A DNA stretch of 64,000 nt from Perna viridis (taxonomy: Eukaryota): NCBI GenBank assembly GCA_037379345.1, contig CM074517.1:2542001-2606000 (forward strand), in the 5' to 3' direction. A program made the position numbers and the translations under genes. A model generated the notes under the pieces. The model saw nothing but the letters and a program-made list of their open reading frames with translations, searched no databases and was not told the origin of the DNA. This document shows, piece after piece, positions 36,383-61,829 of the stretch (its first letter is position 1; every line of letters begins with the position of its first letter).

Positions 36383-36746
36383 ATGGGGAATACAACAGTC
36401 GTTGCATCCAGTGTCAAAGAGCAAGCAGATGCTGGAGCAAAAGAACTTTACAATCTTGTTGATCTGAAGGGTGGGGGTGAACTTGTAGAATTAATGAAAA
36501 GGGCAAGATGGACAAAAAATTTCAAAGAGGTTGATGATAAAATAAATAATGAGGTTAAAAATTTTCTCTATGACGAGGGAAGAGGGAAGAAAATTCCAAT
36601 TGTAGATTTGATCATGATGAGAAGTCAAGAAAGAGAAAGCCGTAAACCTAAGATAGGAAAAGACAAACGATTGAAAGAAAGAGATTTGGCTTTAATCGAT
36701 ATGAATTTTCCAGATGCTGAGGCCAATTATTTAAGGAACAAACCAG
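36383..36746 (+). CDS. nan: TRPV exon 1
   Basis: ORF 36383, donor GTAT at 36747, phase 1. Confidence 0.9.
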
Positions 36747-39700
36747 GTATATACATCTGATAACAACTTTTGTATAATAGCTTGATGGTTCACCTATCAG
36801 ATTCCTCATTAGCTGTTCTGTTTACCCATTATAATACATTTTTTGTACTGTTGTCCATTTTTGGAAGTAAAGTTTAAACTGTTCGAAGTTCAAATCTAAA
36901 ATATTTCAAGTTGGTACTTAAAAGATATTACAACGACAATTCTAATGAGGTTTAAAATCAACATATTAACAGAAGCAAATACGACACTCAAATAAACAGC
37001 ATCACTACACACAATACAGAAAAGCATGCAGATAAAAAATGGCAACATTTTGAGACAGATCGTACATTTGTATATGGTTGTACCAAAATTTGTATGGATG
37101 TAAAACTCACCACAAAACAACTCATATGGCTTGTCAAGGATATTTTGAAATTTTTAAATATTATTCAACTCAGGCTTCTGAGGTTTTTATTAACATTTAT
37201 CAAATTCATCAAAACAAACATGTACATGAATATAAGAAAATTTTAGCATTGAATCAGTCAGATATCAGTCTGATCAGAGACATATGATACAGATAAGAAA
37301 CTTGTTGATCAGCAGTTTATTGATAAACTATCATGCAGCGAAGAATGAGATTTACTGACCTTTCTATTTATTAGTTTAATAAATAAGTGAAAGTAAGGTA
37401 CATTTTCCCTTTTAGTTGAAATGTTCTGAAATAAATTGTAATAGTTGCCCAAGTGATGAAAGAGTGGGAAACCGAAGATTTCATTTAATTATCTTGTGAA
37501 ACAAAAAAGTTTGATAGGTTAAATTGAAAATTATGAATTTAATTTTGAATTATTTTCATATTCATAAAAATTTTGTGGGGGGTGTAGGAAAATTGTTTTG
37601 CATTCTTTCTTTTTTTTTTTTAAAAAAAAATATGGTATGAACATGAAGCTACATGTAAGTCTAAGATTTTACAGAATTTTATTTCAATATTTGTTTTTAA
37701 TAATGTTTTTTTACTTATGTTCATTTAAAGTCAGGTTGTTATTATTGATTAAGTAAGAACAAGATCTTGTTTCCTGCTGCGTGTTAATTTGAGATTTCAG
37801 TTGGTTGCAAATCTTTTTTGATCTAATCCACTTATTCTTGAGGAGATGCATGATGATGTATAGTAAACAATATGAAATATCATTTCCTTCTTGAGGACAG
37901 TTTTCTTGTATGTAAAGTACATTGAAGTAAAAGAGTTATAGACAAAGAAAATATGTGCTTCAGGTCCTTCTATCATACGTGTACATGTATAATAATTAGG
38001 TTCCATATTGACTGATAAAAACATCACTAACTTGAAATATATGAAGTTTCTACTTTTCTCTAAGAAAAAGTAAGTTAGGATATAGATTTATGTTTTCAGC
38101 TTGATTTTTACATGTAATTGTACATGTACATGGGTTATCTACATGTATACTATCTGCGCACTTACTTGTTTATTAGTTGTGCACCTTTACAAATGTGTAG
38201 TAAATATATATCTAGTTGAATGGCTGAATAATAAAACCTGGAGATATACATGTACAACAAAACATTCTACATTATCAATAAGCCCAAAATATTATTGGAG
38301 GAAAAAGATTACACTGAAATGAACATCACTATGTACTTACATGGTACACACAATGTACATTGATTTACAGTATGGAAGAAAAGAAAGGTGTAAAATTCTT
38401 TATTGATGTTGTTTGTAGTTCTCTGACTATATATTTTCCACTTGTTTGTAGCTGACACATTACCAGGTAAGATTTCTGTGGCTTGGTCATTATCAACCCA
38501 ACAATATATTTCTCCCATTTATAAATTTGTAAATGTAATGTACATCCAGCATCAGAAACCTCCCATATACAAAACCTATTGGTTTATTAGTGTATTTCAT
38601 TATAAACAATAATTTACCAAATTCTGAGAGTTGACTTCATTTAGTTCAGGGAAACAGGATTGCACATAGCATTAGGCATGTAACAGACTCTAGAATTGCT
38701 TTGTCTTTTTTCATCAACATTCAAATCTTGACTCTGGGTGCGTTATTTAAACCTCAATATGGACAATTTGGATAGAGTTTGAATTCATTGTTCATTGAAA
38801 TTGTAAAAAATAACTTTGAAAATATACTACCATGAGTACAGTACTTGCATAGTTATGTTACATCTACAATCTGACAATATTGGATTTATTGGTTTTTTTT
38901 TTATAAATTGAACAAACTTGAACTCTTATGATTTAGAGTGACATACTTATTGAACAACATGGTTAATGTGGTGTTAAACATGGTGTAATTGTTATGATCA
39001 GTAAATATTTCCCTGTATACAAGTAACTCTTTGTATGTGTACTTTCCGTGCCAGTGTTAACCTAGTTGATTTACCATTGTCATTCCCCTATAATACTTTT
39101 TGAAGTAGGCTAGAAATGCAAGATGGTGTTGCCACTCACCAGTAATGGTTATTTTGGTTAAATATGACCTGTAAATGGAGATTATTTTGCAATTTTTCTG
39201 CCCTCAAAAAAAAATCACTTCCAAAATTGATTATGCTTACAATGCACCTAGGTGACTTGAATGGTACTAATGCAACTATATTTTTTGCCAAACATATGAG
39301 TACCCATACATGAACACGTAGCTTTTAGTATGCACAAATGTGAGGAACATCAAAAATATATTTCATGTATTAATCATGCAATATGAAAATAATCAGATGA
39401 AAAACTATGACATGCACTGTTATATGTAGTTTACTCCTGGGAAAAGATCTATTCAACTTTCTAGACATGTCAAATCTATGAATTTTAACACATGAAAAAC
39501 TTCTAGCTTCATCCAGTCTTTTAATGATCTTGGGTTTTATTTCTAGTGTCTTGGGGTCTAAACTTGCTCTTCCTGATTGAATTGTTCAGAAATTAATGTT
39601 TTGTATGATTTGTCTCTGTCAATTAATTTTCAGTCATATGAATTCGGTAGAACAATTTTTAGCAGAATTGTCGATAGATACAATACAACAACATCATTGG

Positions 39701-42700: not shown

Positions 42701-45700
42701 TTTTCGCATATATCTCCAAAACTGTTAAGTTTAGCTAAATTCTGACATGGGTGAAAGTTTTCAGCATGATGAGATCTATTTGTGGTCAAATTTTCATTTT
42801 AAACCATTAAGCCTTGTTATTTCTTTCAAAAATCTTCTCCTCTGACACTACTTTACCAATTGAAACCAAACTTTGTATAAATGTTCCTTGGGGTATCCTG
42901 CATAGATCTGGTATGGGGATTTTTGATCCGTCGAAAAACATGGCTGCCGTTACTAAAAGTAGAACATAGGGGTCAGATAGTAGTTTTTCGCATATATCTC
43001 TAAAACCATTAGGTTTAGCTAAATTCTTTCAGTAGCTGAAATGATCCTTATTTTTAGGACTACAAAAATCTTCAGACATAAAAGTTGTCAGACAACTTCT
43101 TATGAGAATTATTGCCCTTTTTTTTTTACAGTTTTCAGTCAATATCTTGAAAACTTTGATAGATAGAAAGAAACTTTCAAATGCAGAAATGATCCTTATG
43201 ATAAGTCTTACCAAAGTCTTCTTGAGTTAAAGTTGTTGGACAACTTCTTGTTAAATTTATTGCCCTTGAAAGTCAGAATTCAACCAGGTGAGCGATTCAG
43301 GCTCCTCGGAGCCTTTTGTTTAAATCAAAAACTCCCTTTGACAATTTGAAAGTCAAATTTTTAAGTTTTCTTTGGTTCAGTTTGGGGGACTTTTATCTAT
43401 TTTATATTTAGGATAGAAGTGAACAATTCACATTTGTATATTCAAAATATCTTTGTAGCAATTTGATTGAAATTTAATTTTTACTAAACTAGGATTACTG
43501 AGTCTTTTCTACCTATTTTGAAATAAGAATATTTATGATAGCTAATGTATCATTCAAATGAGGTTCACTGGAGAAATTTGTGAATTGTTTAATTTAATTT
43601 ACATGTTTAATCCTTATTTTATTATAGGTGAGAGTGCATTACATTTTGCCATTGTAAATGAAGACCCTGCAATGGTAAAATTTCTACTTGATCATGGTGC
43701 TGATTATCATCAGAGAGCTACAGGCAACTTCTTTAATCCTGATGACCAGAAAGAATCCAGGACTGACTCCTTAGAACATGAATGGGTGGATCTTTGTGAG
43801 AAAACCAATTTTAGAGGGTATTACATCTAACTCAAAGTACTAAAATGATATGACATATTTAGTATCCAATTATGGCTCTAAAATTTTAAACATAAGTAAG
43901 GCCAAGATAAAAAAAATGTGTCTGTGTAAGGTGACATTCTTAAAAAAAATATGATAGCTAGGTTTGCATTTTCATTTTCTAATTTTTTTAGGCACTTTTA
44001 CTTCAACCAAATTATTAGTCTCTGAGTGTTTTTTTTAATGGACATGTTAATAATATCTTCATATGTATTAGTAATAACTATATTTAGGGCTTCCGTTACG
44101 ACTTGGTTGACCATACACATTGAAGAATGCAAAAAGCCATGTTTTCTCAAACGGCAGAAACACTTTGACAAACTGTACTTTCGTTTTTTTCCAATTATCA
44201 TTTTTTATTTTTAGTTATTTGATAAAATGGCTTAAGGTTGGGGCAGAAATATAGGGTAAGTCCGGTAAATGTAAACAGACATATTTTTTTCTTTGCCTAA
44301 GGACAGAGAGCAATGTCAAACTGCACTATGTATATGTATCTTAGTTGTCTGCTGATCTACAGTAGACTTTGCAAACTTCTTATGCATCCTATGTTATATG
44401 TATAGACTATTCTTATCTTGATTGATTTATTTTAGCCATGTATATTTTGGAGAGTATCCATTAAGCTTTGCTGCCTGCCTGGACCAAGAAGAGTGTGTTC
44501 GTCTAATGTTGGCAAAGGGAGCTAATCCTAACCTACAGGACACTAATGGCAATACTGTTATGCACATGCTTGTTATACATGATAAGAAGGTATGTCTCTC
44601 TAAATACGTTTGTTCTGTCCATTTTAGAATTTTTTTCTTCAGATTGTCACTATCTATAGATATTTAACAGCTCTATTACATATTCTAATATGCATGTCTT
44701 AATAGTTTTAATGGTTAATAAGTCTGTTATAAAAACAAGCTAAAACTGCATTTACAGGTTGAAGTACAGTACTGTATTTTCAGGACTATAAATCAATATT
44801 TTTTATTCAAAATTTTGAGTAAACTGCAATCAATGAAAGCTGTCACTCAAACAGTCAAACTGGCGATTGAACTCGAAGATTATTGATCAGTGCCACTATC
44901 CTTTATGAATGAATACGAAGATGCTAATAAAAACGTTAAAATATATAAGCAAACTTCCGAAGATATGTTAACAAAACTCTTTTTTTTACTGGTAAGACAT
45001 TATCAAGTCTTCCAGAGTTTTCGGTCCTTTAATATGCAAATTTATACCCATTTATGTTATGTCGTTTCACATTTACATGTGGCTCAAATTATTATCAGTT
45101 AAAGTGTTATCTAAATGGCTAATTGCAACCAAATTTAAAGGTAAAAATGTTCGTTTTTGTATTTATACATTAATTACTGCTCGTAATTATGACCTATGCA
45201 TCAAGCTAATTTCCTGCTAAATTTACACCTTGGTGCCCACGCTTGACATGTTTTACTATTTCGTACACCTGATGATCTAAGGCTTCAGAGTAATTGGCAT
45301 GGAATTCAATAAAAATCATTAAACTCACAAAGTACACCTTAACAAAAAAAACAAATATTCATTTCATTCAGAAATACTATACGTAGTAACATTGCTGGAA
45401 TAATATGCTGTGAAAAACAAACCACTCTACTTGTATCTCCGCTGACACTTATGATATAGATGCACATGTTTGGTCTGACCCTCAACTTATCTGGCAAATT
45501 CGACTTATCTATGGTTTTTTTTTGTTGATTTTGGTCAAAATTAGGCATTTCAACTTACACTCCACATTGACTTATAGTCTGGAAAATACAGGAAATATAA
45601 TCAGGCTTGAAAGAAATGATATTTTTTTTTTAAATATAGTTAAACTTGGCAAGAATTAAGTTTCTTGTAAGACAGTAATGGATGGATATAAAGGAATGTA

Positions 45701-51700: not shown

Positions 51701-54700
51701 GTAAGCTGATTACAAGCATTTCAAAGGTATTGTGAACATATTAGTTCTAAACTTACATGTATGTTAAATTGTCATAGAGAAATAGCCAAAAGAAGTGAAA
51801 ACACAAATTACAAGGTACAGTATAAACTGAATATTTGATGTAAAGCTCTCTATTCTGCTAATATTATTTATATGTAACTGTTACCATTATATTTATAACA
51901 TCTTCTTGGTGTGTTATAAAGTGATTCCCCCTCTTCATCTGTTCAACTTTGGGTATCTTTACAGAGCGGTGCTCCTATGAAGGCTCTATTTCTGCTGTCA
52001 TGTGTATGTGTGGTGTTAATGTTACCTGGTAGAGCTACATGTTCTACTAAGTATGAGGACCATGTTGCTGTGTTAGCTATATTGGGTACGGCTCCGTACT
52101 TCTTGTTTTTCTGCAGGTATGTTGACATTACATAATATATTGTTCTCTAATCACATAATAGAATAGCTTGGTAATAGGAAAAAATGACACTAAGAATAGT
52201 TGTATTAACTGTCCATCCATATTACATTAACATAATATTATTTTTTTTCCAACCATGCATACTTGTGTACTGTAAACCATGAAATTTTCGTGGCAGTTTT
52301 ATTTATTTAATCTGTCACGAATATTTTCTTTGAGGAACATTACAGTTCAACTTGATGAACAATCCCGAATTTAAAACTTTGCAAAAGCAGATTTATGGCA
52401 GAAATCATCAAAAAAAAAATGTGGTGCAAAAATTTTCTAGTTTACAGTATGTCTATTCGATTATTTTTCTTGCCTAAATTTCTACAATTCTTTAAAATTT
52501 GCATTCAGCATCAGCTTGTTTCCTTGTACTGTGTGTATTTTTTTTCAGCTGAAATGAACTTTTTTTATTATGCCCTGCGACAAGCTGTCAAGGGCATATT
52601 GATTTACCCCTGTCCGTTCAGATTATACATGATCATGGCTTTTCCGACTATCTCCTTGTACAGTTTTTGAACTACATCTAAAATATTTTACAAGATATTT
52701 CTACACATGATGAAGGTGTGCAGGGCCAAAAGATTTTGATTTATATGATATATTGCGGAAATTGGTGAAAGTTAGACTTAGTTATTTTCTTCAGAAATAG
52801 GGCTATATGGCTTGTATGGCTATCTCCTCCTGTAGTTTTTGAACTGTATCTAAAATATTTTTTGCAGGATGTTTCTACACATAATGATGGTGTGCAAGGT
52901 CATAGGATCTTGATTTTCATGAAATATTACTGGGTGATAGTTGGACTCTGGAATATTAAGGAACTGGGTGATAGTTAGACTTTGTAATTTTTGTCAGAAA
53001 TATATTCAAAAAAGTTAAGGATTTGTTATTGGGAGTATTAAAATTTCTGATGTGTCTGTCAGTCGTTCCATCGGTCCTCTTTTTCTCATTGCAACTAGTC
53101 TGATACTACCAAACAGAATTTCATGACACTATGTGGCCAGAATACTATTTGTAGATATGCATATATTTAGGAATTTTTTATTCCCAAATTGATCCCCAGA
53201 CCATGAGTAACACAAGTCTTGGAAGGATTTCTGAATCTGCAAACCATCTCTTCATACAAAAATAAACATGTTCCTAATTTCGCAAATCTAGCAAGCGGGG
53301 GCATCATTAGTGTCTTACAGACACATTTGATATCACTACTAACAAATGATGGGGGGGGGGCTTCTGTGATAAACAGGGTTTCTAGTTGCTTTTGATTTTG
53401 TACATTTTTGTCACAAAAAAATTCATCAAACCTTCATCAGAATGATTTTAAATATGGTTATGGTTTGTACCATGTGTAAACTTTATTCAACATGATTATG
53501 CTTCTATTTCCAAAACGTCTTTGTTTCCTTTTAAAGTTTTTTTTTTTTTAAATTTCATTTCACTGATCTTGGCAATTCTTCATGGTAGTGATTCATAATT
53601 TGGTTTACAGTTTCAGCTTGATGGGTTGTAATATGTCAAAATTTTGGCTTGGGTGCATTAATTTCTGTTTGCTATAATATTTTATTATTATTTTAGGGTT
53701 ACATAAATGTTCATCTCCTTTAATTCTAACTCTCCAATCTTTTATGGGAAAGGTTTTGATGTGATTATAGATACATGTATTTTGTTCTCTGTGTGAGCTT
53801 TTTGGCTTGGTTGGTATTAACTTCCTGTCTGTCATAACATTTGTGCCAAATCTCATCAATCCTCCATCAAAGATTTTTCCACTTTCACTGTTTTGTCAAA
53901 TCCTGAAATACAACTTTGATACATTTAGTAATATAATCAATGATGGGATTCACAATAAATTTTATAAAATCTCAGAGTTGATGTATTTTTATTTTTTTTT
54001 ATTATTTTTTTTGTTTTCAGAGGTTTTCGTATCCTTGGACCCTTTGTTGTCATGATCTATAAGATGGTAAAGGGAGACTTGCTGAGATTTTTCATCATTT
54101 ATATTGTATTTATTGTTGGATTTTCACAGTGTAAGTATCTATTTGTCCTGTCAGTTGATAGAGGAATGTCAATGAAGGACTGGTACTGTCATGGTAATGG
54201 TATTTATATAACATATGTTTGGTATTATCTACAATAATTGCTCAGTGATTTAATTACCTCACTTAAGATGACAAGGTGTATATATATTGGAATCACCTTG
54301 TCTGTCAGTCTATACATCATTTAATTTGGCTGCAATTTCATCACAATTATCCCCACTCCCAATGAACAGATTGATTTCAAATTCAATACATGGCTTTTTT
54401 TTTAGATGGGGCATATATTACAAGCCATTTTGGTTGCTGTCTGATATCAAGTTCCTTTTTTGCGGCTAGTGGGGCGTACCTAGCAGCACCTAGCACAATA
54501 ATATGTGTAACATTTTTTAAACCCCATGCAAACAAGTTTTGGAAGATTTCCCCTTTGTACTTTTGGCTGTCCTTTCTATCAGTCTTTATATTTTGTTTCT
54601 CACAACTTTGAAGTATTTTGAATGTTAAAATGATGGTTTGCATGCCCATTAGATAATTTAGTGAAGACTGGTAAAAGCATGCTAGATATTGGTTCTGTTT

Positions 54701-57700
54701 TGCTGTGCTAATAATTAACTTAAAGAAGTCAAAGTAAACAAGTTATATTTAGAATACTGGTGTCTTGGTTTTTTGTAAACCTTAAAGTTTTGTAAATAAA
54801 AATCTGTTTCTTTGCAGCAATGTACATCGTGTTTCAGAATACACCTGAATCCCCTTTCCAACATCCCATTGAGGCCATCATGGGGATGTTCATGATGTCT
54901 TTAGGGGAGTTTGGTGATTATTATGAAAACTTTGATCAAACAGATCATCCGGTTTTGAGTAAAGTAAATCCTGTGTTGTGTAACTGCTTTTCTGTACCAT
55001 TAATAGCCATAATTTTAATCTGTTTTATGTCCTATGTTTTCTCTGTTTAATGTCTGATGGTACCTCAGTGTTTGTCATTGTTGTGTATTATAGACTTAAG
55101 TAGATATGTAGAATTATTCTCTTTTTGTACTGTAAATAATCTTTACTAGTTATTATAGGATTAACCTATCTCCTGTCCTTCTTGTAAAGACTCTTTACTG
55201 GTTATTATAGGATTAACCTATCTCCTGTCCTTCTTGTAAAGACTCTTTACTGGTTATTATAGGATTAACCTATCTCCTGTCCTTCTTGTAAAGACTCTTA
55301 ACTAGTTATTATAGGATTAACCTATCTCCTGTCCTTCTTGTAAAGACTCTTTACTAGTTATTATAGGATTAAATTAGGAGATAACCTAATTATTATTTGA
55401 TCGTGATTTCAGCTTTGTACATCATACACTTGAACAAGGAATGGAGTCCATTCAGTAATCCTATTGAGTCAGTTATAGCTATGTTTATTATGTCCCTTGG
55501 GGAGTTTGGTGACTATTATGTTACCTTCAAACAGACAGATCATCCTACATTAGCAATAGTATGTTAGTCTTTCTCCTTTCTGCACCAGAAACAGATTAAT
55601 TCCTCTATAGAGGGATTAAAACAATACAGAAATGATGCACTTCCACATTTTATTTTAGAATTTTCAGTCAGCTTTTTCAGAGTTGTAGAAACATGAATTT
55701 TTGCTTTTTTGTTCATAATAGGTCAAATTTGTACTAGTGTAGTGATCCATTTCTGCATTGTGTGGAGTTTTTTTTATTAGGATAACAGTTTTTATAAATG
55801 TTTAAAGGGAGATAATCACTGGATTGAAAGTGTTCAGTTATTTACTGAAACATTGTTGCTGTCATGTTGCCTATATTTAACCATTGCATTTGAAGTCTGT
55901 TGCTTTATTTAATTACAAAAATGTACAAAACAACCAAATGGTCAGAAACTGTTATACTTTAGAAATTCCACAGTGAATTTTGAGTTGACATCCCTCCATT
56001 AACATTCTATGTTTGTATAATATGTTATGTCATGTGAATATATAATGTTATTAACATAATGCATGTTTAAAAGTTTAGAAAAGGCCACATTCAACTACAG
56101 TGAAAATACATGATCTTTTATATTGTCTGCTGTAGTTGGTATTAGAAGTCTCAGATTCATAAATATATCTGGGATTTTAAGTTTCAGAAATGTGACACTT
56201 AATTGGAGTTGGACGAACTAATTATTGTGTTATCTGTCCATATTATGATGTAACTTTTCACTCTTTTGCTTTGTAATTGAGTTTTATTCCTTCACTCAGT
56301 TAGCAATTTTTTCTTTCCACACTTTAACTTTTCTTTAATTTGATTTTAAGAAGGTTGCATTTTGACTTTTAAGAACTTTTAAAGATGGAAACAGAAAATG
56401 AACATATTTGAATCTTTTTCTTCCCAATTATATCATTAGATTTTGTACTTAGTACCTTATAGCCCCTCCTGAAGTTTGGAAAGAAAATAGAGCATTTGGA
56501 ATTTTAAAAGTCTGAGGTATACTCTTATTTGGGAAATTTTGCATTATTTTTAAGTGATATTCATTAACACCCTGTATTTGGACTTTTCCTTATCCTAGAA
56601 CTTGAGTTACTTAAAGTGTCTAAATGCAACTTGTATTTTATTTTGTTTAACTTCCATTTTGAGTTGATTAACTTCATTTCAGCATTTTACATTGCCTTTA
56701 TACAATCTACCTGCACACCAGACAATGAACCATGTGTTTTTAACAATGGTTTAGAAGCATGGTTTGGAACATTCACAATGAGTGTTGGGGATTTTGAGGA
56801 TATTTATGGAATATTTGATTCCTCAACTTACCCAACGCTCGTCAAGGTAAGATAAAATTTGGTACAGGTGTACTTGGGTCTAGATTTATTGAGGTAAAAG
56901 AGATTTGTGCAACTCTGTGACTTAAGATTTTTTATCAAGTATGAGTCCAGTGGCAAATAAATATTTTTGTTGATTGTGCTATAGTCAGTTTTTACTAATA
57001 GTATTTGAAAACAATTATAAGAGATAATAAAATTTTACCTTTCTACTTTATTTTTGTTTTAGTACATGTATTTTCAGGCTCTACAACAAATTGACCAACA
57101 TCATTCATTGTTAGTTAAGGTTTTTATAATTCTTTTTATGACTTTGTTGATTTTTTTTTTACAATTTTATTAACATTGTTATTTATGATTTCCTCTGTAT
57201 AAACTTTAGGATTTTTTGTTCTCTTTATTAAATATAAAAGCTGCACTTGCTTTAAATGTCTAAATGTTGTAAAATGTTGATGTTTTGTGTTTTTTTCCTT
57301 GTCATTTTGCTTGTTTTTTTTTTATTATTTCACAATTTGTTCTCGTAGATTTTGACTTTTAGAGAACTTATTTTTTTAAATCTTGCAATTAACTAATAAT
57401 TGTTAATTAGTTAATTATATGAAAATATATATTTCATCCCTGTGATAAATAACCTTTTTGTAAAAAATGTCAGGAAATATGCCCAGCTTTCACAGATACT
57501 TATATTTATTGTTCTCTCTTTAAGTTAACCTTTCTTAAGTAAGTTTTTAAATTTTGTAATTACTGTTTATCTCAATTACCTCTAAATTACCTGAAATAGT
57601 TCATATGAGACAAACAAGCCAGTTTATATCTTGATAGTTATATACATATGTAATTACACATACAAAGTACCATATGTTCAGTGAAATGGCTGACTGGTTA

Positions 57701-60700
57701 GATTTAAAGTGAAACATGAAAGCTTGATTATGATTTTAGATAATGTTTGCCATCTACATGATCTTGGTGACGTTACTTCTAGTCAATATGTTAATTGCTA
57801 TGATGGGTAATACATACCAGCTGATTAATGAAACACAGAAGGAGTGGTTCAGACAGGTATATTTATATATTGTAACATCACTTTATTATACCCTTGGCAA
57901 ACAAAGATTGGGGGCAGGATATTGGAATCACCTTGTCTGTTCATCTGTCTGTTTGTCCACATTTCTTATAAGTGCAGCTACATCTAAGCCACAAAAGGAT
58001 TTGATGAAATTTTATAGGAAGGTTGGATATCATAAGTAGGTGTGCATGAAACATTATAATCACTGTCAAGGGGGCCCGGAGAAAATCCTGGAGAAGTGTT
58101 TTACATGTAAAAACCTTGTATGTGTAAGTGCAACTCTTTCTAAACCACTCAAAGGGTTTGATGAAATTTTATAGGAAGGCTTTGGATCACATGTAAACTT
58201 GTATAAAGGAATATAATTACTGTAGGAGGACTTTAAAGGCAGATAATCCAAATTAAGGGTTTTACATATTAAAACCTGGAAAGCACAACTCTTCTAGACT
58301 GCTTGAGAGATTTTGATGTCATTGTTTAGAAAGGTTTGGCATCTTATGCAGATGTGCATTAAGGAATATTATTTTTGTTAGATGACATCAAAGGGAGATT
58401 TTAACTTTGAGTCCCATTTGATGTGAGGGTATTCTCTTTGTGAGCTTTTAGTTTTTTTTTGCTGTTTCTACCTCCTGATACATCCAATTTCAGGCTACAA
58501 CAGTGATAAAAGATATCTTCAATTTTAAATATTTTTTTTTATCAAATTGACTCTTACATCTCTGATAAACAAAATAATGTCAGTTATGAACATCTTGCTT
58601 ACCAGGATAACTGAGATATTTTCTGTCTTCACTGCCATTATTCTGTGCATAATTGTAGTATAACAATTTTCATGTTTTTACAAAAATTATGATGGTGGGT
58701 GATAAATGTTAAGTTCATATTTGTGACATCACATGGCTATCTGGATTTCGTCATGGAATCCAAAATTATTAATCATTGGAACTAATATAAATGTTGTTAA
58801 TTCAAGATATCAACTTGCCCAAAATAATAATATTGATACTTCCAAATGATGAACTAGACAAAATTTATAAATATAGAAAAACAAGCTACAAACGAAAAAC
58901 AACCAATGTATTGGTTTATTATTTTAAAACTGGAAAAAATTCTAACATGTTTGTCACTATACCATACAACAAGAAACCTGTGTAAAATTGAACTCATTTT
59001 TTACAGTGGGCCAAAGTTGTACTTGTTATTGAGCAGAGTGTTACAACAGAGGAGAGAAAGAAACAGCGTACTAAGTATTCCCAGCCACTACCAGATGGGG
59101 ACAGGGCTCTAGTCATCAGATGGCATCAGTCTGTAAGTATTTCCAGCCCCTACCTGATGGGGACAGGGCTCTAGTCATCAGATGGCATCAGTCTGTAAGT
59201 ATTTCCAGCCCCTGCCTGATGGGGACAGAGCTTTAGTCATTAGATGGTATCAGTCTGTAAGTATTTCCAGCCCCTACCTGATGGGAACAGGGCTCTAGTC
59301 ATTAGATGGCATCAGTCTGTAAGTATTTCCAGCCCCTGCCTGATGGGGACAGAGCTTTAGTCATTAGATGGTATCAGTCTGTAAGTATTTCCAGCCCCTG
59401 CCTGATGGGGACAGCTTTAGTCATTAGATGGTATCAGTCTGTAAGTATTTCCAGCCCCTACCTGATGGGAACAGGGCTCTAGTCATTAGATGGCATCAGT
59501 CTGTAAGTATTTCCAGCCCCTGCCTGATGGGGACAGAGCTTTAGTCATTAGATGGTATCAGTCTGTAAGTATTTCCAGCCCCTGCCTGATGGGGACAGCT
59601 TTAGTCATTAGATGGTATCAGTCTGTAAGTATTTCCAGCCCCTACCTGATGGGAACAGGGCTCTAGTCATTAGATGGCATCAGTCTGTAAGTATTTCCAG
59701 CCCCTGCCTGATGGGGACAGGGCTTTAGTCATTAGATGGTATCAGTCTGTAAGTATTTCCAGCCCGTACCTGATGGGAACAGGGCTCTAGTCATTAGATG
59801 GCATCAGTCTGTAAGTATTTCCAGCCCCTGCCTGATGGGGACAGGGCTTTAGTCATTAGATGGTATCAGTCTGTAAGTATTTCCAGCCCCTACCTGATGG
59901 GGACAGGGCTCTAGTCATTAGATGGCATTAGTATGTAAGTATTTTCAGCCCCTGCCTGATGGGGACAGGGCTGTAGTCATCAGATGGCATCAGTCTGTAA
60001 GTATTTCCAGCCCCTACCTGATGGGAACAGGGCTCTAGTCATTAGATGGCATCAATCTGTAAGTATTTCCAGCCCCTGCCTGATGGGGACAGGGCTGTAG
60101 TCATCAGATGGCATCAGTCTGTAAGTATTTCCAGCCCCTACCTGATGGGAACAGGGCTCTAGTCATTAGATGGCATCAGTCTGTAAGTATTTCCAGCCCC
60201 TGCCTGATGGGGACAGGGCTTTAGTCATTAGATGGTATCAGTCTGTAAGTATTTCCAGCCCCTGCCTGATGGGGACAGGGCTTTAGTCATTAGATGGTAT
60301 CAGTCTGTAAGTATTTCCAGTCCCTACCTGATGAAGACAGGGTTCTTGTCATCAGATGGCATCAGTCTGTATTTCCAGTCCTACCTGATGGGGACAGGGC
60401 TTTAGTCATTAGATGGTATCAGTCTGTAAGTATTTCCAGTCCCTACCTGATGAAGACAGGGCTTTAGTCATTAGATGGTATCAGTCTGTAAGTATTTCCA
60501 GTCCCTACCTGATGGGGACAGGGCTGTAGTCATCAGATGGCATCAGTCTGTAAGTATTTCCAGCCCCTACCTGATGGGAACAGGGCTCTAGTCATTAGAT
60601 GGCATCAATCTGTAAGTATTTCCAGCCCCTGCCTGATGGGGACAGGGCTGTAGTCATCAGATGGCATCAGTCTGTAAGTATTTCCAGCCCCTACCTGATG

Positions 60701-61829
60701 GGAACAGGGCTCTAGTCATTAGATGGCATCAGTCTGTAAGTATTTCCAGCCCCTGCCTGATGGGGACAGGGCTTTAGTCATCAGATGGCATCAGTTTGAA
60801 AGTATTTCCAGCCCCTGCCTGATGGGGACAGGGCTTTAGTCATTAGATGGCATCAGTCTGTAAGTATTTCCAGCCCCTACCTGATGGGAACAGGGCTCTA
60901 GTCATTAGATGGCATCAGTCTGTATTTCCAGTCCTACCTGATGGGGACAGGGCTTTAGTCATTAGATGGTATCAGTCTGTAAGTATTTCCAGTCCCTACC
61001 TGATGAAGACAGGGTTCTTGTCATCAGATGGCATCAGTCTGTATTTCCAGTCCTACCTGATGGGGACAGGGCTCTAGTCATCAGATGGCATCAGTTTGAA
61101 AGTATTTCCAGCCTTACCTGATGGGGACAAGGCTGTCATCATTAGGTGACATCAGTCTGTTAGTATTTCCAGCTCCTACCTGGTGGGGATAGGGCTCTAG
61201 TCATCAGATGGCATTAGTCTGTTAGTATTTCTGATCAGATAGATATTCCCAGGCCTTTCATTATGGAGACTGGGCTGTAGTCATCATATGGCACCAGATA
61301 TAACATGAGTAGTGACATCAGCCGAGCAGAAGCACTACTATCTTTAATCCTATAGCCTACACAATGATATTTTGAGTTTAGTATTATTTTTTACCTGTTG
61401 TCCATAAGTTATTCTGTCTTTCTATTTATATACCCTATTTCTTGTATGCACAACTAAAAATGTGACCTTAACTTCTTTTTGAATTTTAATTAAACTTCAC
61501 CTCAAGGTATAACATATCATATCAATGTGCATGCAGTTGATTTCTGAGGTTCTAATGAGGACATGTTTATTTATTAACGCACAGGTGGAGCACGTCAACA
61601 TCTAAAATTAAGAAAATTTTGATTCCATGTGTGATAATCATGAATGTTGTTTTTTTATCATTAACAGGAGAAAGAAAGAGAGGATCTCAGGGTGGCCAGA
61701 GAGGAACAGAGACTGAAACAGAAACAGAAGATTATGGCAGAAAGAAAGAAATTAATTCTGAAGAAAACGACTAATCTGGCTAGTATCATCAACACAGCTG
61801 CAGCTAAGGAGGGCAAAGTTAATGTCTGA
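36383..61829 (+). CDS. nan: TRPV cation channel, Nanchung/OCR subfamily (often auto-annotated TRPV5/6-like); join(36383..36746,40787..40960,43628..43817,44436..44589,47322..47423,49260..49409,49694..49776,50149..50341,51281..51388,51965..52116,54021..54130,[54818..54963 or 55413..55558 or 56683..56846],57740..57856,59007..59132,61668..61829); 776 aa (12a/12b) or 782 aa (12c)
   Basis: The N-terminus MGNT...VKEQA...[20 protein letters not shown] resembles Drosophila Nanchung as recalled. Ankyrin repeats ([65 protein letters not shown]), six TM helices, S4-S5 linker [17 protein letters not shown]6 [15 protein letters not shown] and TRP helix EWFRQWAKVVL. All phases are consistent. Confidence 0.92.
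40787..40960 (+). CDS. nan: TRPV exon 2 ([18 protein letters not shown]...DEYY)
   Basis: TTACAG/GTAAG boundaries, ankyrin repeat. Confidence 0.92.
41549..41688. mobile_element. TTAA-flanked hairpin MITE-like element
   Basis: TTAAACTTACCCCTACTATGGGAGTTAGTCATGCC pairs imperfectly with GGCATGACTAACCCCCTATTAGAGGTTAGTTTTAA. Confidence 0.45.
42474..43322 (+). mobile_element. Helentron/HINE-like element, family A copy 3
   Basis: Shares TTCTCCTCTGA...AAACTT...GAATGTTCC and ATGGCCGCC.TTACTAAAAATAGAACATAGGGGTC modules (twice), ends CCAGGTGAGCGATTCAGGCTCCTCGGAGCC. Confidence 0.65.
43628..43817 (+). CDS. nan: TRPV exon 3 ([21 protein letters not shown]...TNFRG)
   Basis: TAG/GT boundaries, 190 nt. Confidence 0.92.
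44436..44589 (+). CDS. nan: TRPV exon 4 ([15 protein letters not shown]...VIHDKK)
   Basis: TTTTAG/GTATG boundaries, 154 nt. Confidence 0.92.
44772..45591. mobile_element. Non-autonomous Tc1/mariner (pogo/Tc2-like) DNA transposon
   Basis: TIRs CTGTATTTTCAGGACTATAAATC and GACTTATAGTCTGGAAAATACAG (about 23 bp, few mismatches); TA on the left. Confidence 0.6.
45787..45915. repeat. 33-bp tandem repeat, about 4 copies
   Basis: Unit TTTTGATTGATATAAGCTATTAAAAATTTGTTA. Confidence 0.85.
47322..47423 (+). CDS. nan: TRPV exon 5 ([34 protein letters not shown])
   Basis: CACAG/GTAAGT boundaries, 102 nt, last ankyrin repeat. Confidence 0.9.
47376..47775 (+). repeat. About 65-bp tandem repeat derived from the TRPV exon 5 3' end plus donor (exon + 5 copies)
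   Basis: GATGTAAGT-like junction recurs at 47421, 47486, 47551, 47613, 47677 and 47742. Confidence 0.85.
48248..49110. mobile_element. Non-autonomous Tc1/mariner (pogo/Tigger-like) element
   Basis: 22-bp TIRs TAGTGAAACTTCTCCAAACTGG and CCGGTTTGGAGAAGTTTCGCTG, TA on both flanks. Confidence 0.7.
49260..49409 (+). CDS. nan: TRPV exon 6 ([26 protein letters not shown]...VVYG)
   Basis: TTTTAG/GTAAGT boundaries, 150 nt, TRPV WxYG motif. Confidence 0.92.
49694..49776 (+). CDS. nan: TRPV exon 7 ([27 protein letters not shown])
   Basis: CAG/GTAAT boundaries, pre-S1 LLxEKW motif. Confidence 0.9.
50149..50341 (+). CDS. nan: TRPV exon 8 (S1 and S1-S2 loop)
   Basis: TTACAG/GTAAC boundaries, 193 nt. 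[24 protein letters not shown], with a loop carrying NLT/NNT sequons and Cys residues. Confidence 0.88.
50395..50443 (+). mobile_element. Possible tRNA-derived SINE fragment
   Basis: Degenerate B-box-like GGATTTGATCCCC followed by GTCACACCAAAGACT; short and weak. Confidence 0.25.
50517..50597. repeat. Near-perfect inverted repeat (about 36-bp arms)
   Basis: TTCAAAGTTCAAATTAGAGAAGTATAAATATAGTGT and ACACTATTTTTATATTTCTCTAATTTGAACTTTGAA. Confidence 0.75.
51281..51388 (+). CDS. nan: TRPV exon 9 (S2)
   Basis: TTTTCAG/GTAAG boundaries, 108 nt. Confidence 0.88.
51965..52116 (+). CDS. nan: TRPV exon 10 (S3-S4)
   Basis: TTTACAG/GTATG boundaries, 152 nt, ends APYFLFFCR. Confidence 0.9.
52270..52447. 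mobile_element. Short TA-flanked MITE
   Basis: TA|CTGTAAACCATGAAATTTT ... AAAATTTTCTAGTTTACAG|TA. Confidence 0.5.
52561..53387 (+). mobile_element. Family B copy 2
   Basis: Same 5' and 3' ends and body as 19237-20362, with fewer internal modules. Confidence 0.65.
54021..54130 (+). CDS. nan: TRPV exon 11 (S4-S5 linker, S5)
   Basis: TTTTCAG/GTAAGT boundaries. [36 protein letters not shown], ends phase 1. Confidence 0.92.
54818..54963 (+). CDS. nan: TRPV pore exon 12a (mutually exclusive variant): [48 protein letters not shown]
   Basis: TTTGCAG/GTAAAT boundaries, 146 nt, phase 1 to 0. Confidence 0.88.
55140..55371. repeat. 52-bp tandem repeat, about 4.5 copies, between pore exons 12a and 12b
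   Basis: Unit CTCTTTACTGGTTATTATAGGATTAACCTATCTCCTGTCCTTCTTGTAAAGA. Confidence 0.9.
55413..55558 (+). CDS. nan: TRPV pore exon 12b (mutually exclusive variant): [48 protein letters not shown]
   Basis: TTTCAG/GTATGT boundaries, 146 nt, open frame, paralogous to 12a. Absent from the ORF track. Confidence 0.85.
56683..56846 (+). CDS. nan: TRPV pore exon 12c (mutually exclusive variant): [54 protein letters not shown]
   Basis: TTTCAG/GTAAG boundaries, 164 nt, phase 1 to 0, open frame. Confidence 0.85.
57740..57856 (+). CDS. nan: TRPV exon 13 (S6: [26 protein letters not shown]...EWFRQ)
   Basis: TTTTAG/GTAT boundaries, 117 nt. Confidence 0.92.
57882..58453 (+). mobile_element. Helentron-like non-autonomous element
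   Basis: TTTATTATACCCTTGGCAAACAAAG start, GTCT microsatellite, internal ~165-bp modules, 3' GTGAGGGTATT complementary to the 5' end. Confidence 0.5.
59007..59132 (+). CDS. nan: TRPV exon 14 ([12 protein letters not shown]...[20 protein letters not shown])
   Basis: TTACAG/GTAAGT boundaries, 126 nt, TRP helix. Confidence 0.88.
59071..61295 (+). repeat. 62-bp minisatellite, about 35 copies, derived from the TRPV exon 14 3' end plus donor
   Basis: Unit GTAAGTATTTCCAGCCCCTACCTGATGGGGACAGGGCTCTAGTCATCAGATGGCATCAGTCT. Confidence 0.95.
61668..61829 (+). CDS. nan: TRPV terminal exon 15 ([21 protein letters not shown]...GKVNV*)
   Basis: TAACAG acceptor after a T-rich tract, phase 0, charged coiled-coil-like tail, TGA. 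Confidence 0.8.
   Translation, partial: EKEREDLRVAREEQRLKQKQKIMAERKKLILKKTTNLASIINTAAAKEGKVNV

Follow-up and report, generated by a model that had tools for sequence, protein, structure and literature searches.

In our study, a 64,000-nucleotide stretch of Perna viridis DNA (GenBank assembly GCA_037379345.1, contig CM074517.1, positions 2,542,001 to 2,606,000 of the forward strand; hereafter the window, whose own numbering is used below) was analysed around exon 12c, located at 56683–56846. Exon 12c was found in a tandem cluster of mutually exclusive exons, 12a-12b-12c, of a TRPV channel gene of the Nanchung (Nan)/OCR-2 type, and transcripts carrying a single cassette were found for 12a and 12c. 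Exactly one cassette is placed in each mRNA between S5 (exon 11) and S6 (exon 13); with a different number the frame shifts to an early stop. The chosen cassette supplies the whole outer pore, that is the end of S5, the extracellular turret, the pore helix, the selectivity filter and the loop to S6. The c-type pore encoded by 12c arose by exon duplication before the split of bivalves and gastropods, and its conservation since then is close to that of the ancestral a-type. Taken as a whole, the reading of 12c as the c-type member of a mutually exclusive tandem pore-exon cluster in a bivalve Nanchung/OCR-2-type TRPV gene is considered very probable.

The pore cassettes and their splicing

The exons of the cluster and the elements of 12c, all on the forward (+) strand, were as follows.

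54020–54130, + strand: constitutive exon 11, S5 plus 1 base; donor for all three cassettes
54818–54963, + strand: cassette 12a, 146 nucleotides; ancestral Nan-type pore
55413–55558, + strand: cassette 12b, 146 nucleotides; filter as in 12a, with a different turret and post-filter loop
56683–56846, + strand: cassette 12c, 164 nucleotides; end of S5, turret, pore helix, filter and post-filter loop of the c-type pore
56712–56735, + strand: turret loop C-TPDNEP-C of 12c, with the Cys codons at 56712–56714 and 56733–56735
56748–56783, + strand: predicted pore helix of 12c, placed by position against helix 628–639 in the AlphaFold2 (AF2) model of the Mytilus orthologue P0003
56760–56762, + strand: Trp codon inside the predicted pore helix of 12c; lineage-specific
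56778–56807, + strand: filter stretch of 12c, motif [VI]G[DEQ]F[ED][DE]; aligns to stink-bug Nan through a profile of the three cassettes
57740–57856, + strand: constitutive exon 13, S6; acceptor for all cassettes

Exon 12c was flanked by aacttcatttcag (ending in catttcag) on the 5' side and by gtaagat on the 3' side, and the borders of all three cassettes were AG/GT. It was open over its full 54 residues in the frame starting at 56685, and stops were present in both other frames. Exon 11 ended with ...GFSQ plus a T nucleotide, followed by gtaagt. All three cassettes started in phase 1, where the T of exon 11 together with CA or CT forms a Ser codon, and ended in phase 0. Their lengths of 146, 146 and 164 nucleotides each left a remainder of 2 on division by three. 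Given this length class and the phase-1 end of exon 11, the frame is restored only if a single cassette is included; the inclusion of none, two or three breaks it, and the single-cassette outcome is enforced by the reading frame. When read from their own first base, 12b contained a stop at codon 7, 12c at codon 24 and 12a at codon 26, and exon 13 contained a stop in frame 2, the frame reached after skipping all cassettes. Transcripts with a wrong number of cassettes would presumably be degraded.

The three cassettes were found to be related to each other. With the 12c peptide as a query, tblastn on the 64-kb window matched 12a at 54820–54963 (37% identity, E 3e-7) and 12b at 55451–55552 (41% over 34 residues, E 1.5e-5), and no other match below E 1 was present in the window. 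The MAFFT alignment of the three cassettes gave an identity to 12c of 42% for 12a and 35% for 12b, and the pairwise count of identities was 23/48 and 17/48, respectively. In this alignment, 12c contained an insertion of 6 residues with a Cys on both sides in the linker between S5 and the pore helix, and a Trp in the pore-helix stretch LEAWFGTF. The filters of 12a and 12b read SLGEFGDYY, whereas that of 12c read SVGDFEDIY. The initial annotation had described the 12c filter, the longer Cys-bracketed turret, the Trp and the homology to 12a and 12b, and all of these were present in the sequence and in the alignment. A six-frame search of the whole 723-Mb assembly returned no further copy of 12c, only 12c itself, 12a (E 0.018) and 12b (E 0.235). 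As only members of the cluster were found assembly-wide, 12c is neither a dispersed repeat nor a copy of an exon of another gene. The intron between 12a and 12b, of 449 nucleotides, was found to contain a 52-nucleotide tandem repeat of 4.7 copies (96% match) at 55131–55372.

The use of the cassettes was studied with the assembled Logan contigs of four runs from four studies (X1, X13, X14 and X24), which were mapped on 51900–57890; 15 of the 23 splice joints are listed, and the statements on joints refer to these. A GT..AG joint from exon 11 to 12c (54130 to 56683) was present in contigs of X1 and X14, and a joint from 12c to exon 13 (56846 to 57740; listed as 56844 to 57738, with the cut shifted by +2) was present in X1, X13 and X14. 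One contig of X14, 2813 nucleotides long, carried exons 10, 11, 12c and 13 in succession, with neither 12a nor 12b. For 12a, the joint 54130 to 54818 was found in X1 and X13 and the joint 54963 to 57740 in X13; one X13 contig of 2031 nucleotides carried exons 10, 11 and 12a, the joint of 12a to exon 13 being listed for the same run. The 12a and 12c forms thus stood side by side in X1 and X13, and none of the joints of exon 11, 12a, 12c and 13 was present in X24. Joints from 12a to 12b, from 12a to 12c or from 12b to 12c were absent from the joints listed. Three differences were found between the contigs and the exons of the window, all of them synonymous (one each in exon 10, 12a and 12b), and none was listed in 12c. 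The initial annotation had named a lack of expression as one outcome that would speak against it; this is contradicted by the contigs of three studies, in which 12c was joined in frame to exons 11 and 13 and is thus spliced into mRNA.

The Nanchung/OCR-2-type gene

In invertebrates, the TRPV channels of ciliated sensory cells are those of the Nan-Iav and OCR-OSM-9 kinds, which are also targets of insecticides. The gene in the window is a Nanchung/OCR-2-type TRPV of a bivalve, and its closest annotated orthologue is from Mytilus. Its first coding exon (36383–36760) was almost identical to the N-terminus of the Mytilus orthologue, and therefore the gene spans at least 36.4–61.8 kb of the window. 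Pfam Ank families were found on the exons at 43558–43827 and 44422–44580, followed by Ion_trans on exon 13 (E 1.7e-6, the end of the family), and exons 10 and 11 and the three cassettes gave no Pfam match. Exon 13 was identical to Mytilus P0003 at 39/39 positions, and its best match among solved structures was Nanchung (E 2.4e-11), followed by Inactive (8e-10) and then by TRPC and TRPV6. With the profile of the three cassettes, Nanchung was the sole TRPV match among solved structures (E 2.8e-8), in the stink-bug Nan-Iav-calmodulin complex.

The full-length tests of fold and family were run on the Mytilus orthologue P0003 (RefSeq XP_071154325.1 / XP_076091215.1, 'TRPV member 5-like isoform X6'). 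The AF2 model of P0003, built on an alignment of 36 sequences, had a predicted local distance difference test score (pLDDT) of 81 and a predicted template modelling score (pTM) of 0.71. In this model, S5 ended at residue 611, followed by a non-helical turret at 612–627 containing both Cys residues and by the pore helix at 628–639; the V-G-D residues were non-helical, a short helix was present at 643–652, and S6 started from 656. The best Foldseek matches of the model were the chains of Nanchung (E 6.7e-55 to 1e-54, TM 0.78/0.86, 47–49% identity), followed by Inactive (1e-40, 32% identity) and by TRPV5/6 at 1e-27 or weaker. The gene is thus related in family and fold to insect Nanchung and C. 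elegans OCR-2 (Nan-Iav-calmodulin structures 9NVN–9NVS; PMC12808645, cited, like the other PMC articles below, from excerpts). As the gene of the window is of the Nan/OCR-2 type, the database name 'TRPV5-like' is only a label and does not assign a family.

The Nan/OCR-2 filter motif is given in the excerpt of PMC4164786 as (T/S)-L/I-G-E-F-x-(D)-x-Y; 12a and 12b fitted it and share the 'LGEF..D.Y' filter type, and 12c retained G-x-F-x-D-x-Y and deviated at three positions. The Ca2+-selective TRPV5/6 class was not matched, the filter being of the Nan type and not the FLT(V/I)ID given in the same excerpt, and TRPV5/6 being distant structural matches. An S6 exon of the Inactive/OSM-9 type was found elsewhere in the genome, at C1:63290300–63290419 (PDB: Inactive E 3.2e-15 against Nan 5e-8). 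As this exon is present, the usual partner subunit is encoded in the genome, which is a further likeness to insect Nan, and the paralogue on C1 is presumed to be the partner of the channel in the window.

Distribution and age of the c-type pore

A HMMER scan of 1.84 billion representative proteins with the 54-residue 12c peptide gave 12 matches at E<=1e-3. Eight of them, at E<=1e-10, showed 56–64% identity over the whole exon, and all eight contained the Cys pair and M(S/N)VG(D/E)FED. A cluster member, P0020 (964 amino acids), was an unrelated protein without exon 12c and was ignored. A search with the pore region of P0003 gave 332 matches, of which 120 are listed, and the pore types were read from the pore segments of the matches listed. 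Among these, c-type isoforms were annotated in at least 11 named bivalve genera, namely Mytilus (three species, identical), Saccostrea, Ostrea, Crassostrea (C. virginica), Pinctada, Argopecten, Mercenaria, Mya, Dreissena, Sinanodonta and Potamilus. An a-type isoform was also annotated in most of these genera, and a b-type also in Mytilus edulis. The Mytilus models held the a-, b- and c-type pores of one locus (P0054–58, P0060 and P0003/P0024–32).

Among the gastropods listed, the c-type filter was found without the Cys pair in Haliotis, Pomacea, Babylonia, Nucella, Elysia, Candidula and Lymnaea. In the Biomphalaria glabrata model P0076 (835 amino acids), a single protein carried an a-type cassette (MSLGQFGDFY) and, after it, a c-type one. 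Two alternative exons were probably strung together in this model by an annotation error, and the model places the a- and c-type cassettes in one gene, a before c, in the same order as in the window. The non-mollusc Nan proteins listed (bryozoans, hemichordates, amphioxus, Lingula, Owenia, a nemertean, a centipede, spiders and insects) contained no double-acid pore, most of them being of the (L/M)G-E-F-G-D kind. A Cys-closed turret was also absent from them, so that the c-type differs from these proteins by F-E-D in place of F-G-D and by the Cys turret. The insect Nan proteins listed had one pore type each (MSLT[NS]FGDYY and similar), in contrast to the three alternating cassettes found here. 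No c-type pore was found in two cephalopod models (a-like) or in a Solemya model among those listed, which, being single gene models, are weak evidence. The cephalopods came from a wider region search with the Haliotis c-type protein, which gave no c-type beyond bivalves and gastropods among the matches listed. The b-type was seen only in Mytilus and in the window among the annotated isoforms listed.

Conservation was counted over 23 c-type rows, 13 from bivalves and 10 from gastropods. Two consecutive acids after the filter Phe were present in 23/23 rows, and so was Val or Ile before the filter Gly. The constant marks of the c-type are two: a Val replaces the Leu ahead of the filter Gly, and another acid stands beside the conserved Asp (F-G-D to F-E/D-D/E). 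The extra acid (G to E, FGD to FED) claimed in the initial annotation is thereby a hallmark of the whole class. The Cys-pair turret, claimed there for 12c, stood for bivalves, where C-x5-6-C-[VL]F was kept in 13/13 rows and also in complete short fragments, and did not extend to gastropods, where it was absent from 10/10 rows. The other two changes named there did not hold as features of the class. The residue after the filter Gly, where E to D had been noted, was D in 13 rows, E in 7 and Q in 3, so that the change belongs to some lineages only, and the pore-helix Trp was found in 1/23 rows, that of the window alone. On these counts, the E to D change and the Trp are read as lineage noise.

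The window and Mytilus were identical at 33/54 positions (61%) for the c-type, at 36/48 (75%) for the a-type and, with isoform X5 of Mytilus edulis (P0060), at 38/48 for the b-type. Faster evolution of 12c, suggested by the values of 61% and 75%, was rejected after a comparison of species pairs, in which the c-type exon was less conserved than the a-type in 20/36 pairs. Since c was lower than a in only these pairs, the constraint on the c-type is similar to that on the a-type.

An exon phylogeny with rows from other phyla, proposed in the initial annotation, was built from 62 rows and 54 columns. It included 59 proteins from the 120 listed, one per taxon and pore type, and left out identical isoforms, most of the near-identical mosquito and butterfly rows, P0076 and the later-found P0143–P0159. 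All 23 c-type rows formed one group (84/85), with a bivalve (97/89) and a gastropod subclade (100/98) that both have good support. Within the tree, 12c of the window adjoined the Mytilus c-type (91/75) and 12b adjoined the Mytilus b-type (99/86). Under insect rooting 12b fell outside all other rows, which was taken as an artefact of the 54 columns. The claim that 12c is an older duplicate than the split of 12a and 12b is supported by the taxonomic spread, because the c-type spans bivalves and gastropods (13 and 10 rows) and is lacking from the non-mollusc Nan proteins listed. As the tree does not place 12b, a younger age of 12b rests on its narrow distribution among the annotated isoforms.

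The same tree bears on another explanation, in which the 'FED' pores of bivalves and gastropods arose by convergence, so that 12c would be bivalve-only and not much older than 12b. The branch joining the two c-type clades (84/85) was not starred and was drawn from 54 columns, and the two clades differ in that the bivalves have the Cys loop and the gastropods a helix start of the SSWW type and a longer post-filter loop. Against convergence, the filter motif (S/N/A)-V-G-x-F-(E/D)-(D/E) was the same in both classes and the c-type formed one group in 84% of the bootstrap trees. The a-type followed by c-type order in Biomphalaria P0076 equals that of the window, and the a- and c-type proteins of Pomacea were recorded on contigs of equal size (24,344,826). 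We regard convergence as improbable, and a single origin of the c-type before the bivalve-gastropod split is preferred.

The unionids were found to differ in their annotation and in the turret. Their c- and a-type pores stood in separately numbered neighbouring models (Sinanodonta P0051/P0065, ..038370/..038373; Potamilus P0052/P0062, ..018329/..018328), which may be true tandem duplicates of the gene or one gene split into two models. In the c-type of the unionids, the turret contained three Cys (CTCExGxPC), and the filter Gly was followed by Gln instead of Asp/Glu.

Pore chemistry and comparison with other channels

The filters compared in the excerpt of PMC4164786 were SMGGYDYEEF in OSM-9, TIGEFTVLY in OCR-2, TLGEFQDLY in sea-squirt Nan, TMGDYNY in aphid Iav and TIG(M/L)G(D/E)L in TRPV1–4, the aromatic residues being aligned there across an insertion in the OCR-2/Nan-type filter. 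A negative charge at D605 of OSM-9, which aligns with D682 of TRPV4 in the outer pore, was reported as critical in that excerpt, and filter mutants of OSM-9 showed changed Ca2+ transients, with the behaviour not abolished. Following this alignment, the two residues that separate Phe from Tyr/Ile (G-D in 12a and 12b, E-D in 12c) would occupy the D605 slot, and the conserved change of the c-type would therefore double the acid at this outer-pore position, in agreement with the extra acid that the initial annotation placed at the outer mouth. The residue after the filter Gly (E in 12a and 12b, D in 12c) cannot be the defining difference, since it varies within the c-type and is N or S in the insect Nan proteins listed.

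According to the excerpt of PMC12808645, Nan and Iav alternate in a 2:2 tetramer whose natural agonist is nicotinamide, a defined pore is not formed by Nan on its own, Nan is reported to work with partners other than Iav, and the loop of Nan between S5 and the pore helix can coordinate Ca2+. By homology with the insect channel, the protein of the window would form a 2:2 heterotetramer with the Inactive-type partner, in which the choice of 12c would swap two of the four filter strands and two turrets. In bivalves the c-type has as an extra a short, acidic, Pro-rich turret loop that two Cys would close. With 12c the outer mouth would thus become more negative, and a loop stapled by an intrasubunit disulfide would probably lie above it. 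The turret Cys residues occur or vanish as a pair (13/13 bivalve, 0/10 gastropod rows), and both lie in the non-helical linker 612–627 of the P0003 model; the paired pattern and the predicted extracellular position fit a disulfide. The likely outcome would be an altered affinity for divalent cations (Ca2+ permeation or block), possibly with sensitivity to metals or redox state, and the ligand-binding and gating parts would be left untouched by the choice of cassette. By analogy with the alternative pore exons of NALCN and CaV3, both the changed Ca2+ handling and the turret disulfide of 12c are plausible; the altered Ca2+ selectivity, the divalent or proton block and the disulfide or redox site put forward in the initial annotation would be supported by such analogy.

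The c-type might instead mainly alter a trait other than selectivity, such as assembly and choice of partner, ciliary trafficking, gating or mechanical coupling through the turret and pore helix, or the binding of an extracellular ligand or matrix to the Cys-closed loop. The cassette exchanges the whole outer pore and not the filter alone, and the most bivalve-specific feature is the exposed turret loop. The need of Nan for Iav in forming a pore and its other reported partners, together with the unaltered Ca2+ inhibition in insect Nan loop mutants (PMC12808645) and the behaviour retained in OSM-9 filter mutants with changed Ca2+ transients (PMC4164786), would also suit such a role. The sole feature present in all 23 c-type rows, the double acid after Phe, sits in the filter, at a position matching residues critical in OSM-9 and TRPV4 (PMC4164786), and the gastropod c-types without the Cys loop still carry the filter change. 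A role mainly outside selectivity is therefore considered rather unlikely, and an effect on the handling of divalent cations is preferred.

Several observations weigh against the favoured reading. Joints of 12b were absent from the 15 of 23 joints listed, and 12b was covered by unspliced contigs only. The runs were labelled only 'RNA?'; since spliced contigs were found, RNA is present in them, and X1, which covers introns at a depth of about 5, may hold DNA or pre-mRNA as well. The contigs say nothing on level, strand or tissue. A scan of 54131–57739 for inverted repeats gave 6 short pairs, none of which links one site to each cassette; competing docking/selector RNA pairings occur in some insect clusters and are not required for the class of mutually exclusive exons. 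The 12c pore is the most divergent of the three cassettes, and 12c alone matched no TRP structure at E<=10, its only matches being armadillo-repeat noise at E 0.14 or worse; Nanchung was reached only with the profile of all three exons. The exon tree is drawn from only 54 columns and leaves 12b unplaced, and its c-type group is not a starred branch. In the excerpt of PMC12808645, mutation of two Ca2+-coordinating residues in the loop of stink-bug Nan left Ca2+-dependent inhibition unchanged, so that turret chemistry need not matter for this inhibition. The three Cys of the unionid turrets fit poorly to a simple single pair, and what is said here of selectivity, block and the disulfide is what we infer.

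In another explanation, 12c is a decaying or 'poison' duplicate, the product of splicing noise or a trigger of nonsense-mediated decay that gives no functional channel. The divergence of 12c (23/48 to 12a), its lack of a TRP match in the PDB when taken alone and the early stop that results when it is included together with 12a or 12b would suit such an exon. Its frame is open and its splice sites are canonical, and contigs with 11, 12c and 13 joined in frame were found in three studies. Its orthologues retain the filter motif across bivalves and gastropods, and the Cys pair in bivalves, with conservation like that of the a-type (20/36 pairs). A poison exon is therefore extremely improbable, and 12c is taken as an intact, expressed pore cassette.

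A wider reading is offered tentatively, as possible but short of an even chance. In this wider reading, a second filter chosen by splicing would have been kept in molluscs since before the divergence of bivalves and gastropods, giving, for one and the same ciliary mechano- or chemosensory channel, forms of low and high affinity for divalent cations, the latter possibly gated by metals or redox state, in different cells or conditions. If true, the acid at the outer mouth would be doubled on two of the four strands, with a disulfide-stapled acidic loop above the pore in bivalves, and the channel would be the first case of a TRPV in which mutually exclusive exons set the ion selectivity.

Alternative pore exons are known to alter selectivity in NALCN (PMC3557258) and CaV3 (PMC7382465). 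As described in the excerpt of PMC3557258, exons 15a/15b and 31a/31b of NALCN are tandem, mutually exclusive, duplicated exons for the re-entrant pore loop, as the cassettes are here, and they swap a charged filter residue (EEEE against EKEE/EEKE); their conservation extends across invertebrate phyla, molluscs among them. In the exon tree of NALCN, the derived exon type forms a single clade (PMC3557258), which resembles the c-type group. NALCN is a four-domain channel in which one exon changes one of four non-identical filter positions from E to K (PMC3557258), whereas the gene of the window encodes a single-domain TRPV subunit in which an acid and not a base is added, by homology twice per heterotetramer. 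In the T-type CaV3 channels of invertebrates, exons 12a/12b are alternative exons for the extracellular loop between S5 and the pore helix. In the excerpts of PMC7382465 and PMC9694082, these exons are described as differing in paired Cys above the filter and as shifting the Na+/Ca2+ preference and the block by Zn2+/Ni2+, and they are known from the mollusc Lymnaea. In CaV3 the filter ring is the same with either exon, whereas with 12c the turret and the filter are both altered; CaV3 is of another channel family, and function has been shown for it. The TRPV case would add to this invertebrate pattern, in which diversity in selectivity comes from alternative pore exons and not from duplicated genes.

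Splice variants in the pore loop of TRPM3 differ in their permeability to divalent cations. TRPM3 also contains two extracellular pore-loop Cys residues that form a reversible intrasubunit bridge controlling activity, a precedent for the redox idea, although it belongs to another TRP subfamily and its Cys residues are constitutive and not from an alternative cassette, as given in the excerpt of PMC12905292.

Full-text literature searches returned no published description of alternative pore exons in Nan-type or mollusc TRPV channels, and no word beginning with 'splic' was present in the Octopus TRPV preprint or in a TRPV evolution study. The c-type pore is already in RefSeq as automatic isoform models, so that its recognition is new and not its sequence. 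These 'TRPV member 5-like isoform X..' models of Mytilus, oysters, clams and scallops are direct orthologues under a misleading name, from which the window differs by the pore-helix Trp and by the T/N/E residues in the turret loop. Such labels in mollusc annotations hide distinct pores, which are missed by studies that collapse isoforms, as in the Octopus TRPV preprint, where CD-hit at 0.95 was used. Two 'TRPVA' sequences of a scallop in the excerpt of PMC9664204 might be such isoforms or true paralogues. As all solved Nan-Iav structures are closed, it is poorly known how this pore sets Ca2+ entry (PMC12808645), and a natural, long-conserved pair of pores differing at the outer filter and turret, with the rest identical, is a ready-made test of the residues for permeation and block.

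Some further features were found in and beyond the gene. The region 52500–53400, in the intron after exon 10, was covered in all four runs at a summed contig depth of 100–700. Variant letters and joints inside it were numerous, and its behaviour is that of an abundant dispersed repeat that is transcribed, rather than that of an mRNA segment of this gene. A third S6-like match was present at C1:54877910–54878020, with 47% identity to exon 13 and inside an open frame of 473 residues, and may belong to a further TRP-type channel gene with a long exon. A tandem array with a unit of 62 nucleotides was present at 59072–61231 (35.2 copies, 90% match), and its open frames repeated a C-terminal peptide of P0003; part of a coding exon further downstream has therefore expanded into a satellite within the gene.

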